From positions 5,342,845-5,406,844 of the forward strand of contig SMSO01000014.1 of assembly GCA_004764695.1 (NCBI GenBank): 64,000 nt of DNA. Reading direction: 5' to 3'. This document shows, piece by piece, positions 11,816-15,283 of the stretch. Source of the DNA: Schizochytrium sp. TIO01. Lineage: Eukaryota > Protista > Bigyra: Labyrinthulomycetes. The position numbers were made by a program, and so were the translations under genes. The notes under the pieces were generated by a model. That model ran no database searches, had not been told where the DNA came from, and was given only the letters and a program-made list of their open reading frames with translations. Every line of letters starts with the position of its first letter. Position 1 is the stretch's first letter.

Positions 11816-14800
11816 ATGCGCTCCACTACGTTTCTTGCACTGGTGGTACTTGCACTAAGCAACGCCTCACAAGCCACAGCAAGTACACCGAGCGACTGTC
11901 CATCGGAGCTTGAATACACAGGTGACTCAGCAACTGATGAGGCAAACTTGGAGACATGCCTTGAAGAACTCGTTGCATGCTATGAAGATGACCTAGAGGA
12001 TGTCTCGCCAGCGACGTCAGGCGATCGTGTCCTTGTGCAAGCAGCCGGGGCAACTTTTCCACTCCGGCTGTATCAAGACGCAATCTTTGCCTTTCGCTTC
12101 TATAACACAAGTATCTCGGTCACATATGAAGGTATCGGCAGTGGTCGAGGCAAGTGCCGCATTGAATCCTACTTTTATGAATGCTCAAATGTCTGCACTG
12201 CTAATAGTAGTGCAGTAGATACCTACGGCGATGAGTTCATCGACTTTGCTGGTTCTGATGCAGTTGTGGAGGATGATATGTACGATACATATACGGATCT
12301 ACAAATGTACCCTGCTGTCGCCGGAGCAGCTGTACCGGTGTACAATCTTCCTGGACTTGATGCCCTAGACCACACGCTTGTGTTGAGCAAAACAACCGTT
12401 GCGCAAATCTTCCGCAAGTGCGACTCTTCAATTACTGGATGCGAAACAGGTTCGATTTGGTACTGGAATGATACAAAAATTCTGGCTCTCAACTACGACT
12501 CTGACAATGCTACTCGTACAACCCTTATTCACGAAGCTCTCCAGGCAGCAGGAGAAATCTACGTAGCTGTACGATCTGATACGTCTGGTACCAGCGAAAT
12601 CTTTAAAGGCGCTTTGTCTCAATTTGAAGATGCCTTTGCGACCCAAGTTGGGGACAGTAGTGATAACTCTGACTATAACGCTATCGTCACCAAACACGAT
12701 AGTAATGTTGGTGTTGCAGGCTACGTTGCTCTCACTGAGAGTGCTATTGGATATTCTGTTCTCGGAGAAGCTCTAACCATTGGTTTGACACGAGCCTCCA
12801 TTAAAATTTCCAATTCATCTGCCGCAGTCGAAGCAACAACTACTTCGGTTAATAACGCAATGGTAGAGAAGGGTCTTGACTTTGGCACGACTGCTCTCGA
12901 GCAGGAGCGTCTCGTTGCAACAATCTACGATGCTCAAGGCTCTCAGGCTTGGCCTATTGCTGGTTATACATACTTTGTCATTCGCAAAAACACCACACGG
13001 GATGGCACGAGCTGTGCTAACCGTTTGGCGACCCAAAATTTTCTTTTGTGGTTCTACGAGAACTCCGTTTCTCAATCAATTGCAGAGTCCTTAGGGTTTT
13101 CCCCTCTTTCCGATGAGGTCCGCGATACAGTCACTGCACGCATCAAGTCAGACATGTACTGTGATGGAAAACAAGTGTACCAAGAGACTGATACTTATAC
13201 TCCAACAATTGCGTATGCTGGTGCTTCTGTTTTTGAGGTTATCTTTGATCAGTATGAGCTCTCGTACGGCGTGGTCGATTCTGCAACAGAGTTCAACAGC
13301 ACATTTATTTCCACAACCGCTTCTAAAGCTGTTAATCGGCTCATCTCTACCAAGGACTCAGACGCACCAACAACAATTGCTGTGGTTCTTTCTTCGAGCC
13401 AAGCTACGACACCCGAACATGTAGTTAGCATCCCTTATGTAGGTGTTGGCCTTGGAGTTTCGGTAAATTTCTGCTCCTCCACTGCTGATACATGTCCAGA
13501 TGTGACACAAATAAACATGACCGTAAATGTCTTGGGTCGGGTACTCTCCCAGAATATTACAACGTGGGACCATGAGGACATTCTTGCCATCAACCCAAAT
13601 ATTGAGCAGTCTGTGATTGAGAACCAAACCATTATCGTTGTGGAGGAAGAGGGTTCATATGATGAACTTAAGACCAAGTTCGTCGAATACATCCGAGAAG
13701 TTGGCAACCTGCCTAACTTTACCATTGTAGCGTCGATTACAAAGGACTCATTGGAAGCAGTCCGATCTGCCGTTGCTGTTCAGGCTTTTTCCATTGCTTA
13801 TAACCCAACGATTGGTGAGTCTGACCAACTCGAGGCCTTTTATGTCAGCGTTGGTGTCGATGGTGCACCCTACGTTCAGCCAACACTTACGGCAATCGGT
13901 GCTTGCGCAACTGAAGACGCATATGATTCTACCACTGGAAACCTGGACTTATCCTCAGTGGCTGGAGCAAAAGCCACGAATGGATGTTATCCTCTCGTTG
14001 ATACTATGAACCTTGCAGTACGTAGCAAGTATACCTCTGCAGCCGGAGACTGTGGTGGAGACAGTGATACAACAATTGGTGAGGTCAACACACAATTTCT
14101 GGGGTTTCTTTTAGACAATGTGCTTGAGCAGGGCGGCGATTCTTCTGTTGAGGAACCTCTGCGCACTCAAGGTTTGTATCCTGTGTCTACACTTGATTTC
14201 AACATTGAAAAGAACCTTGAGCTAATCTCCTCAATCACATGTGATGGAGTATCAATCTTAACTCCCGAAGAGAACAAGAATTTGATTCCTCTCTCTGTTG
14301 TGGGTCTCGGCATCGCTCTTGTTATCATTTGTTCTCTTCTGATCATCTTTCTAGCTGTGTGGGTCCAGGTCAACCGCCGTCAAAAGATCATCCTGATTTC
14401 CTCTCCGCCATTCCTGTTACAGATTCTTCTTGGTGCGCTCATCTCAGTCTCTGCAATTATTCCATTGAGTCTTCAAGATGATGATGTTTTCTACACCTCT
14501 TCGGACACAAGTGGTCTTGACATGGCATGCCAAGCAGCTCCGTTTCTGTATTCAATTGGCTTTGCCTATTTATATTCGTCACTTTGGCTGAAGACATGGC
14601 GTTTGGGGCGTATTTTTGACAATCCCAAACTTAAGCGCATCTTCATCACCAATCGTAAGATGCAAGCGTTCCAAGGTTTGCTGCTCATTGTGATTATTGC
14701 ACTTAACATTGTTTGGATTGAGGTTGACCCCTTAAGATGGGAACGTGTAGACTTGACTACAGACTCGCAAGGGAACGTGCTGACTTCTTATGGTCGTTGT

Positions 14801-15283
14801 TACTCTGAGAAGTCTTTAGTTCTCGTTGCACCGCTTGCTGCAATTTTACTTCTTTCTCTCCTCTACGGAATCTACCTGATTTACCAGTCACGTCGCATTC
14901 CCTCCGAATATGGAGAAGGTCGTTATATTGGTTTTGCTTTAACGATTGCTTTTGAATCTCTTGTACTGGGCATTCCGGTTCTATTTTTGGCAAGTAATAA
15001 CCCAACCACGTCTTTCATTATTAAGATGTGTATTATCCTTGCTACAAGCGCAGCAACTGTGGGCTTTTTGTTTCTGCCCAAGGTCTGGCACGTCTACGCC
15101 TGGGGCTGGACCACTGGCATTACGACTGATTCTGAGAAAGACTATAGTTTTACACACTCCAAGCCCCGATTGCAAGATACTGCGCTCCAATCAAGCTCTT
15201 TTATTGACAGCTTCAAAGATCATACCCGCTCTTTCATGGAGCCAAATGGAAATGATCATGATCATGATGAAGAGACAGTGTAA
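11816..15283 (+). CDS. Receptor fusion: signal peptide + two PstS-like periplasmic phosphate-binding domains + class C (GABA-B-like, 7tm_3) GPCR 7TM domain
   Basis: Probable ATG at 11816 (MRSTTFLALVVLALSNASQA, a signal peptide), giving 1155 aa. Domain 1 has the PstS motifs AAGATFP, YEGIGSGRG, IDFAGSDA, PVYNLPG, WND..ILALN, RSDTSGTS, AIGY and WPIAGYTY. Domain 2 is a degenerate copy (ITTWDHEDILAINPN, CYPL). The C-terminal 7TM has class C hallmarks: ISSPPFL, CQAAPFLYSIGF..LYSSLWLKTWRL.RIF, DPLRW, GRC, EGRYI and LFLPK. Confidence 0.88.
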   Translation: MRSTTFLALVVLALSNASQATASTPSDCPSELEYTGDSATDEANLETCLEELVACYEDDLEDVSPATSGDRVLVQAAGATFPLRLYQDAIFAFRFYNTSISVTYEGIGSGRGKCRIESYFYECSNVCTANSSAVDTYGDEFIDFAGSDAVVEDDMYDTYTDLQMYPAVAGAAVPVYNLPGLDALDHTLVLSKTTVAQIFRKCDSSITGCETGSIWYWNDTKILALNYDSDNATRTTLIHEALQAAGEIYVAVRSDTSGTSEIFKGALSQFEDAFATQVGDSSDNSDYNAIVTKHDSNVGVAGYVALTESAIGYSVLGEALTIGLTRASIKISNSSAAVEATTTSVNNAMVEKGLDFGTTALEQERLVATIYDAQGSQAWPIAGYTYFVIRKNTTRDGTSCANRLATQNFLLWFYENSVSQSIAESLGFSPLSDEVRDTVTARIKSDMYCDGKQVYQETDTYTPTIAYAGASVFEVIFDQYELSYGVVDSATEFNSTFISTTASKAVNRLISTKDSDAPTTIAVVLSSSQATTPEHVVSIPYVGVGLGVSVNFCSSTADTCPDVTQINMTVNVLGRVLSQNITTWDHEDILAINPNIEQSVIENQTIIVVEEEGSYDELKTKFVEYIREVGNLPNFTIVASITKDSLEAVRSAVAVQAFSIAYNPTIGESDQLEAFYVSVGVDGAPYVQPTLTAIGACATEDAYDSTTGNLDLSSVAGAKATNGCYPLVDTMNLAVRSKYTSAAGDCGGDSDTTIGEVNTQFLGFLLDNVLEQGGDSSVEEPLRTQGLYPVSTLDFNIEKNLELISSITCDGVSILTPEENKNLIPLSVVGLGIALVIICSLLIIFLAVWVQVNRRQKIILISSPPFLLQILLGALISVSAIIPLSLQDDDVFYTSSDTSGLDMACQAAPFLYSIGFAYLYSSLWLKTWRLGRIFDNPKLKRIFITNRKMQAFQGLLLIVIIALNIVWIEVDPLRWERVDLTTDSQGNVLTSYGRCYSEKSLVLVAPLAAILLLSLLYGIYLIYQSRRIPSEYGEGRYIGFALTIAFESLVLGIPVLFLASNNPTTSFIIKMCIILATSAATVGFLFLPKVWHVYAWGWTTGITTDSEKDYSFTHSKPRLQDTALQSSSFIDSFKDHTRSFMEPNGNDHDHDEETV

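Follow-up and report, generated by a model that had tools for sequence, protein, structure and literature searches.

Tandem PstS-type domains joined to a class C seven-transmembrane domain in Schizochytrium sp. TIO01: a candidate cell-surface phosphate receptor

Perception of external phosphate is poorly understood in eukaryotic microbes, and the routes that are known are mostly transporter-linked or intracellular. A gene of the thraustochytrid Schizochytrium sp. TIO01 raises the question of whether a phosphate-binding protein of bacterial type could serve as the input of a eukaryotic receptor. The gene lies in a stretch of 64,000 nucleotides (nt), here called the window, on contig SMSO01000014.1 of assembly GCA_004764695.1 (positions 5,342,845 to 5,406,844, forward strand). 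It encodes one protein in which two PstS-type domains, D1 and D2, precede a class C seven-transmembrane (7TM) domain. We lean towards the view that this protein is a cell-surface phosphate receptor, in which D1 would bind orthophosphate, a ligand-free D2 would relay the signal and the GABA-B-like 7TM domain would activate a G protein. An intact and well-understood phosphate pocket on a receptor of the G-protein-coupled type (a GPCR) is a directly testable candidate in a cultured and industrially engineered organism.

Two PstS-type domains and a class C membrane domain in one frame

The first domain retains the phosphate site of bacterial PstS. D1 matches Pfam PBP_like_2 at 1.9e-16 (61.1 bits against a cut-off of 27) over amino acids (aa) 67-414, and PstS entries of the PDB by sequence at 1e-12. 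In a full-length AlphaFold model, Foldseek places it with E. coli and Burkholderia PstS (E 3e-16, target-based TM-score (TMt) 0.85), and its structure and sequence matches include the mutant PstS structures 1ixi and 1quk. In E. coli crystal structures the ligand residues of PstS hydrogen-bond phosphate and define tight, selective binding, with D56 discriminating phosphate, which is protonated, from sulfate. The annotated record of E. coli K-12 PstS was aligned by MAFFT with D1, a paralogue and eleven homologues. The motifs GATF, GSG, GSD and RSDTSGTS align to T10-F11, S38, D56 and R135/D137/S139-G140-T141, which confirms the predicted retention of the phosphate-ligating motifs. All nine E. coli site residues are identical in D1: T80 (T10 of E. 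coli), F81 (F11), S109 (S38), D148 (D56), R253 (R135), D255 (D137), S257 (S139), G258 (G140) and T259 (T141).

The second domain has the same fold and an altered site. D2 alone reaches 4e-4 in Pfam, under the cut-off. A profile of 61 D2 sequences aligns end to end with a profile of 76 D1 sequences (hhalign probability 99.9, E 5e-35, 321 columns). An AlphaFold model of D2 alone, built from 57 sequences, has a predicted local distance difference test score (pLDDT) of 91 and a predicted TM-score (pTM) of 0.90, and its top Foldseek matches are PstS structures (E 3e-17, query-based TM-score (TMq) 0.70-0.72, 15-16% identity; TMt 0.78-0.79 at E 1e-16). Read along the ligand positions, D2 carries S and V, and then S at D56, E at both R135 and D137, Y at S139, D at G140 and E at T141. 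Beyond the first two, every listed ligand is lost; acidic residues are among the replacements, and the ligand-equivalent columns are not conserved among the 61 D2 sequences. A conserved Cys-Asp/Glu-Gly motif closes both D1 and D2 and marks the repeat unit. On the profile comparison and the predicted structure, D2 is confirmed as a genuine degenerate PstS duplicate, with its ligand site lost, as the original prediction had proposed.

Compared with bacterial PstS (E. coli 1ixh/2abh), both copies keep the fold (TMt 0.85 for D1 and 0.79 for D2) and D1 keeps every ligand. Unlike PstS, the protein is not free in a periplasm. It has inserts with Cys, its PstS unit stands in two copies, one of them degenerate, and a 7TM domain is fused to it.

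The C-terminal part is a class C domain of the GABA-B type. Pfam 7tm_3 matches aa 833-1089 at 1e-34 (120.8 bits against a cut-off of 33.5) and scores 124.2 bits on the isolated C-terminal part. Among solved structures the best sequence match is GABA-B2 (4.6e-24), followed by GABA-B1 (2.9e-14), GPR156 and the metabotropic glutamate receptors (mGluRs). Seven long helices span aa 826-1095 in the model, in agreement with the hydropathy peaks. Modelling of the C-terminus as a class C domain, a test set in advance, gave that result: Foldseek on the full-length model returned GABA-B2 (root-mean-square deviation 3.2-3.4 over 282 columns) and the orphan GPR156 (TMt 0.73-0.82), a further class C relative.

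Class C receptors share a disulfide between transmembrane helix (TM) 3 and extracellular loop (ECL) 2, an ionic lock between a TM3 Lys and a TM6 acidic residue (GABA-B2, mGluRs) and a TM7 motif. In 13 family members C905 and C995 (the TM3-ECL2 pair), K926-x-W928-R929 (TM3), E1034 (the start of TM6) and P1088-K1089 (TM7) are invariant, and they align with GABA-B2 KTWR in TM3, the acidic D-S-K-Y-I-G ahead of TM6 and V-P-K in TM7. KxWR in TM3, an acidic residue ahead of TM6, PK in TM7 and the cysteines of TM3 and ECL2 are thus shared with GABA-B2, as is the direct joining of ectodomain and 7TM domain with no cysteine-rich domain between them.

The ectodomain sets the protein apart from GABA-B, in which it is a type I flytrap (ANF_receptor/LIVBP). 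A type II PstS fold in place of the type I flytrap had been predicted, and Pfam indeed finds PBP_like_2 and no match to ANF_receptor or Peripla_BP_6 in the protein. The type I flytrap is typical of class C receptors and not universal among them, GPR156 having none. A further difference is that the ligand here is presumed to be an inorganic anion. The pairing of one ligand-binding with one ligand-free binding-protein domain is a likeness; in GABA-B the two lie on two subunits, and here they stand in tandem on one chain.

The coordinates of these parts are collected in Table 1. The predicted limits of D1, D2 and the 7TM domain agree with dissection by hidden Markov models (HMMs) to within a few residues. 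The predicted signal peptide agrees with the translation, which has a hydrophobic, signal-like start directly after the first ATG. The first 23 aa run from a basic start through a hydrophobic core of 10 residues to a small-residue site of the cleavage type, and look like a signal peptide. The tail had been described as short and Ser-rich. It is short, and it is only mildly rich in Ser/Thr, with scattered Ser/Thr residues, an acidic run, the ending ...EETV and a pLDDT of about 30. An ending of the acidic-x-Val kind (window 15257-15280) is common to the closest orthologues only (EETV, DDEV, NDTV, EESV, DGAV) and may be a PDZ-type or endoplasmic reticulum export signal.

Table 1. Parts of the receptor gene and its product in the window
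Feature	Position	Strand	Basis and remarks
Coding sequence	11816..15283	+	1155 aa plus stop; open reading frame (ORF) listing; 7tm_3 and PBP_like_2 (Pfam) share the frame
mRNA, single, unspliced, ~4.1 kb	11335..15488	+	Collinear contigs of four RNA-like runs
Signal-peptide-like N-terminus, aa 1-23	11816..11884	+	Read off the translation
D1, intact PstS-type domain, aa 63-452	12002..13171	+	Pfam, NCBIfam, PDB, Foldseek, E. coli PstS alignment
D2, PstS-fold domain, ligand site lost, aa 462-817	13199..14266	+	hhalign, D2-only model, Foldseek
Class C GABA-B-like 7TM domain, aa 822-1094	14279..15097	+	Pfam, GABA-B2 alignment, model, hydropathy, Foldseek
Cytoplasmic tail, aa 1095-1155	15098..15280	+	Disordered in the model; sequence

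All of this belongs to one transcription unit. The single intronless ORF of the original prediction stands, with one unspliced mRNA seen both in the contigs of RNA-like sequencing runs and in an MMETSP transcript of 4134 nt, flagged 'type:complete', that encodes the identical protein (P0001, 100% identity over all 1155 aa). The contigs of four runs from four studies, guessed to be RNA, were placed on window positions 11000-16200. The runs look like transcriptomes because their assemblies amount to 15-37 Mb against a genome of 64 Mb and their contigs end at gene borders. Three runs each give one contig (11335/11352..15439/15488) and the fourth gives two abutting contigs, all collinear with the window and free of joints, gaps and indels. 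No contig depth is seen over the intergenic stretches on either side (11000-11173 and 15524-15697), and the next gene has a contig of its own. Two genes or a mis-assembly were ruled out, as single contigs span the ORF in three of the four runs and the break in the fourth is gapless. The objection that there might be two separate transcripts is likewise answered by contigs of the RNA-like runs that cross the ORF without a gap. The bacterial-code listing begins the ORF at TTG 11723; the first ATG is at 11816, and the 5' untranslated region (UTR) ahead of it, ~480 nt from a transcript start near 11335, contains no upstream ATG. By the contig ends of the same runs, the 3' UTR measures ~155-205 nt.

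A widespread family with several outputs

Relatives elsewhere had been anticipated, and they are numerous. A profile of 13 full-length members was searched against 1.84 billion representatives and gave 17,392 matches at E<=0.001; the best 150 of these, together with earlier sequence matches, made 159 proteins that were dissected with D1, D2 and 7TM HMMs. At least 62 of the 159 are D1-D2-7TM proteins, ~20 are variants thereof and 39 carry D1-D2 with no 7TM domain. Named D1-D2-7TM members include records from Hondaea, Mucochytrium quahogii, Heterosigma akashiwo and Batrachochytrium salamandrivorans, and most others are metagenomic. Among homologues with a name, one from Hondaea fermentalgiana comes closest (64% identity), and relatives in this species are already annotated, as GABA-B/mGluR-like.

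The D1-D2 unit is also joined to other outputs. In a scan of eight D1-D2 proteins with long C-termini, Pfam finds Guanylate_cyc in two, PDEase_I, MHYT and WWE+PARP in one each and nothing further in three. Fusions of this kind include an Ostreococcus tauri protein with a class III nucleotide cyclase (XP_003079620.2; P0298) and a Tetraselmis astigmatica protein with a cyclic-nucleotide phosphodiesterase (P0053). The ectodomains of these two belong to the same D1-D2 clade, and the output differs from the 7TM domain; no characterisation of the function of such cyclase and phosphodiesterase proteins was found in the searched literature. Our list of proteins with other outputs consists of P0298, P0053, P0043, P0111 and P0018. 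The last is a moumouvirus protein of 1617 aa, in which two PBP_like_2 domains are combined with kinase and cyclase domains.

The closest stand-alone relatives of D1 are bacterial PstS proteins of ~390 aa, some of them named Anaerolineales (32-35% identity). A bacterial origin had been offered for test by phylogeny. A quick maximum-likelihood tree was built from 92 D1-type domains, and in it one branch parts all eukaryote-type D1s from bacterial PstS (support 99 by the Shimodaira-Hasegawa-like approximate likelihood-ratio test, SH-aLRT). The bacterial sample is biased to the nearest matches of the query, and E. coli PstS, on which the tree is rooted, forms one long branch, so that a single bacterial origin is compatible with the tree and not proven by it. 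Because 7TM-fused D1s and those with other outputs interleave on this tree, domain shuffling is suggested. When 63 7TM domains are placed on a tree, those fused to PstS group together (6 label changes, where 21 would be expected), and constraining them to a single clade is not rejected (p-AU 0.075, approximately unbiased test). A homologue search with the 7TM domain only returned six proteins, all PstS-fused, which is an effect of the word index and hence uninformative on other ectodomains.

A broader and more doubtful proposal is that the D1-D2 tandem, a ligand-binding PstS with a ligand-free copy behind it, might be a dedicated eukaryotic cassette for the sensing of extracellular phosphate, acquired once from bacteria and plugged into 7TM, cyclase, phosphodiesterase, MHYT and PARP outputs, its 7TM version imitating on one chain the flytrap pair of GABA-B1 and GABA-B2. 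If this tentative proposal were true, the proteins would be the first dedicated family of eukaryotic cell-surface phosphate receptors and would offer a candidate for the phosphate sensors still sought in marine protists.

The architecture surprises less than it might, since the combination of domains was published as early as 2012. Krishnan et al. 2012 (PMC3251606) report PBP_like_2 on the 7tm_3 protein SPPG_06488 of Spizellomyces punctatus, and further domains of the type II periplasmic-binding-protein (PBP) kind on class C receptors of fungi. Rolfe et al. 2016 (PMC4815078) describe four PBP_like_2-7tm3 genes of Plasmodiophora brassicae, each expressed as a single transcript. They took the products for phosphate transporters of a novel class that was unique to the species. 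Our census contradicts the uniqueness to Plasmodiophora. The fusions of both organisms have the same Pfam architecture as the present protein; their orthology is presumed from that architecture. The two reports are domain listings and, as far as they were read, describe no tandem D1/D2, retained ligand residues or function. The original statement that no GPCR of this architecture had been characterised therefore stands as regards function, no functional study having been found, and fails as regards the architecture, which these two papers had already published (PMC3251606, PMC4815078). The gene is a new representative of a published but functionally uncharacterised architecture. Four features appear to be undescribed in the searched literature: the tandem of an intact and a degenerate domain, the phosphate pocket that D1 has kept, how broad the family is and the use of the same cassette with cyclases and phosphodiesterases.

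The transporter name itself implies another explanation, namely that the PstS domains scavenge phosphate for a transporter and the 7TM domain is an anchor or conduit. Besides the naming of the Plasmodiophora homologues by Rolfe et al. (PMC4815078), it has in its favour that JGI pipelines label relatives as 'phosphate transport system substrate-binding protein'. We regard nutrient capture as very unlikely. The 7tm_3 domain has the fold of a receptor and every relative with a solved structure is a GPCR, the microswitch residues of receptors are invariant in the family, and the same ectodomain cassette sits on a cyclase and a phosphodiesterase, which are signalling outputs. Furthermore, the BPD_transp_1 search found no PstC/PstA-type permease, the partner of bacterial PstS, in the 64-Mb genome (37 contigs), while the control was positive in 14 of 14 bacteria and archaea. 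A transporter was rejected as the main explanation on the GPCR-type 7TM matches, the cyclase and phosphodiesterase fusions and the missing importer permease. The census and these points correct the published reading of a transporter unique to Plasmodiophora.

Proposed ligand, relay and G-protein coupling

The mechanism that we favour may be outlined as follows. The protein would be a class C receptor of the plasma membrane in which tandem PstS-type domains replace the type I Venus flytrap. Extracellular orthophosphate would bind in the D1 cleft and close its two lobes; the D56 equivalent, which in PstS selects protonated phosphate over sulfate, is kept. The ligand-free D2, placed between D1 and the membrane, would transmit this movement to the 7TM domain, a role that may be likened to that of the ligand-free flytrap of GABA-B2 partnering the ligand-binding GABA-B1. 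The 7TM domain would then activate one of the heterotrimeric G proteins of the organism. The likely purpose would be to set responses to phosphate starvation or resupply, or to steer zoospores. We infer the identity of the ligand, the relay and the coupling from sequence comparison. The suggested zoospore chemotaxis has an oomycete flavour that is only an analogy, the host being a thraustochytrid, and a proteome of zoospore and vegetative Aurantiochytrium (PMC12221091) does not mention a GPCR or PstS in the text or supplements examined.

The calcium-sensing receptor (CaSR) is a class C GPCR reported to respond to extracellular inorganic phosphate. Its anion sites lie in the type I flytrap and modulate the sensing of Ca2+ and amino acids, whereas here the PstS pocket would be the primary site.

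The phosphate-sensor reading is strengthened because D1-D2 joins cyclase and phosphodiesterase outputs, G-alpha genes are many and the permease of an ABC importer is missing. Several points weigh on the other side. D1 scores 8e-43 against the NCBIfam PstS equivalog TIGR00975, its 146.6 bits lying below the cut-off of 205, and it does not reach the cut-off of PRK10918 either (71.7 bits against 339); because these scores fall under equivalog cut-offs, D1 is a PstS homologue and not an equivalog. The site is well conserved across 76 D1 sequences, which counts for the phosphate reading, with R135 kept in 66, S38 and G140 in 63 each, S139 in 60 and D56 in 48; the entire set of side-chain ligands is kept in 34, and with only about half retaining every such ligand, the ligands may differ within the family. 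After the S109 loop (the S38 equivalent) D1 has a eukaryote-specific, Cys-containing insert. In the full-length model (pLDDT 71, pTM 0.42), the N-lobe stretch with the T10, F11 and S38 equivalents has a pLDDT of 33-67 (aa 60-150), and the mutual arrangement of D1, D2 and the 7TM domain is not reliably modelled. None of the flanking genes in the window has a link to phosphate, and none is expected in a eukaryote. Finally, no functional study (ligand, signalling or phenotype) of any PstS-GPCR was found in the literature searched, outside which most subscription journals lay.

Some of these points could also fit a receptor of the same design in which D1 has another tetrahedral oxyanion or a phosphorylated compound as its ligand, for example arsenate, phosphite, pyrophosphate or an organophosphate. 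In addition to the equivalog scores and the insert, which is Cys-rich and lies beside the binding loops, this alternative may appeal to the low identity of D1 to the nearest bacterial PstS and to replacements at two ligand positions, D56 being T, E or S in 20 of the 76 sequences and T141 being V, A or I in 14. A further point in its favour is a separate receptor of the genome that combines a Phosphonate-bd domain with 7tm_3, because of which related specificities may be split among paralogues. Every PstS ligand is nevertheless kept here and in the close orthologues, including D56 and the pair R135-D137, and we consider another ligand unlikely.

Phosphate binding with no G-protein coupling is a further alternative, in which the 7TM domain would act through other partners, or the protein would be the ligand-binding or regulatory half of a heteromer like GABA-B1. 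Coupling cannot be read from sequence, and the TM7 motif FxPKxY has Trp in place of its final Tyr (PKVW). A heteromer is possible because the genome contains a paralogue of the same architecture. It lies on contig 4 (~1343600-1347070; L001:2105-5569, - strand), encodes 1155 aa with D1-D2-7TM, is 41% identical and keeps all D1 ligand residues; it may serve as the partner in a heteromer or as a sensor with a second affinity. Against this alternative stand the invariance of the TM3 Lys, the TM6 acidic residue and the TM7 Pro-Lys in 13 members, the best match of the 7TM domain to GABA-B2, the subunit that couples to G proteins, over GABA-B1, and an enlarged G-alpha set in the genome. We judge a receptor of this uncoupled kind to be quite unlikely, and we continue to prefer a phosphate receptor that signals through G proteins.

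The enlarged set consists of ~13 full-length G-alpha genes. Four of them lie within 26 kb on contig 30 (1577709-1603772). A G-alpha gene on contig 8 (834-1880) scores the same as the one at 1602726 on contig 30 (372.5 bits) and may have been duplicated recently, or only in the assembly, and the G-alpha sequence at 1646251-1647346 on contig 4 has two in-frame stops.

If the function were confirmed, it would have ecological and agricultural reach, as phosphate matters in marine plankton and the family spans the clubroot pathogen and chytrids.

Other receptors of the genome and genes of the window

Class C receptors of this genome have diverse inputs. The 7tm_3 domain occurs at 37 loci, and among 33 other 7tm_3 ORFs Pfam finds ANF_receptor on 10, Peripla_BP_6 on 8, OpuAC on 5, Cache on 4 and Phosphonate-bd and an MCP-like PDC domain on one each. 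Type II binding proteins and Cache domains can thus both serve as the input of a class C 7TM domain. The receptors with single and double Cache domains are fusions that look unusual. The family lies partly in tandem clusters, for example on contig 35 (786324-813144), contig 7 (836012-889718) and contig 31 (7473493-7504260). The Phosphonate-bd protein, on contig 24 (4270331-4272457; L036:2950-5805, + strand), has a PhnD-type domain (1e-22) and 7tm_3 in one frame of 952 aa, and it is possibly a phosphonate or phosphite receptor, which would make it a second phosphorus-related class C receptor of the genome.

PBP_like_2 occurs at three loci of the genome: the present gene, the paralogue on contig 4 and a Kelch fusion on contig 33 (L002:2636-5272, - strand). 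The last encodes 879 aa with a signal-like start, a Kelch beta-propeller, PBP_like_2 (1.5e-30) and a C-terminal region whose matches, of coiled-coil type, are weak. Its PstS site is partly changed, with F11 replaced by N and G140-T141 by S-S.

The placed contigs also record variation. Eleven single-base differences from the window (11516-15985) are common to all four RNA-like runs, and ten of these are within the transcript of the receptor gene. Five of the ten are coding; four are synonymous and the fifth is L770I at 14123. The shared differences point to a second allele or strain in circulation, the MMETSP protein matching the window instead, and the excess of synonymous changes offers weak evidence of purifying selection.

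The neighbours of the gene in the window encode a proteasome ATPase, an EF-hand-MFS transporter, a DEAD-box helicase, a KDPG aldolase fusion and a Na/Ca exchanger. The transporter (3532-5718, - strand; 728 aa) has a pair of EF-hands before MFS_1 and may be regulated by calcium. The Na/Ca exchanger (22812-25705, - strand) extends over two overlapping ORFs with Calx-beta straddling the break, which could mean that there is a short intron, a frameshift or a fault in the assembly. In the aldolase fusion (21327-22817, + strand), the KDPG/KHG aldolase (4e-29) occupies the C-terminal 200 aa of a frame of ~496 aa with a long N-terminal extension.

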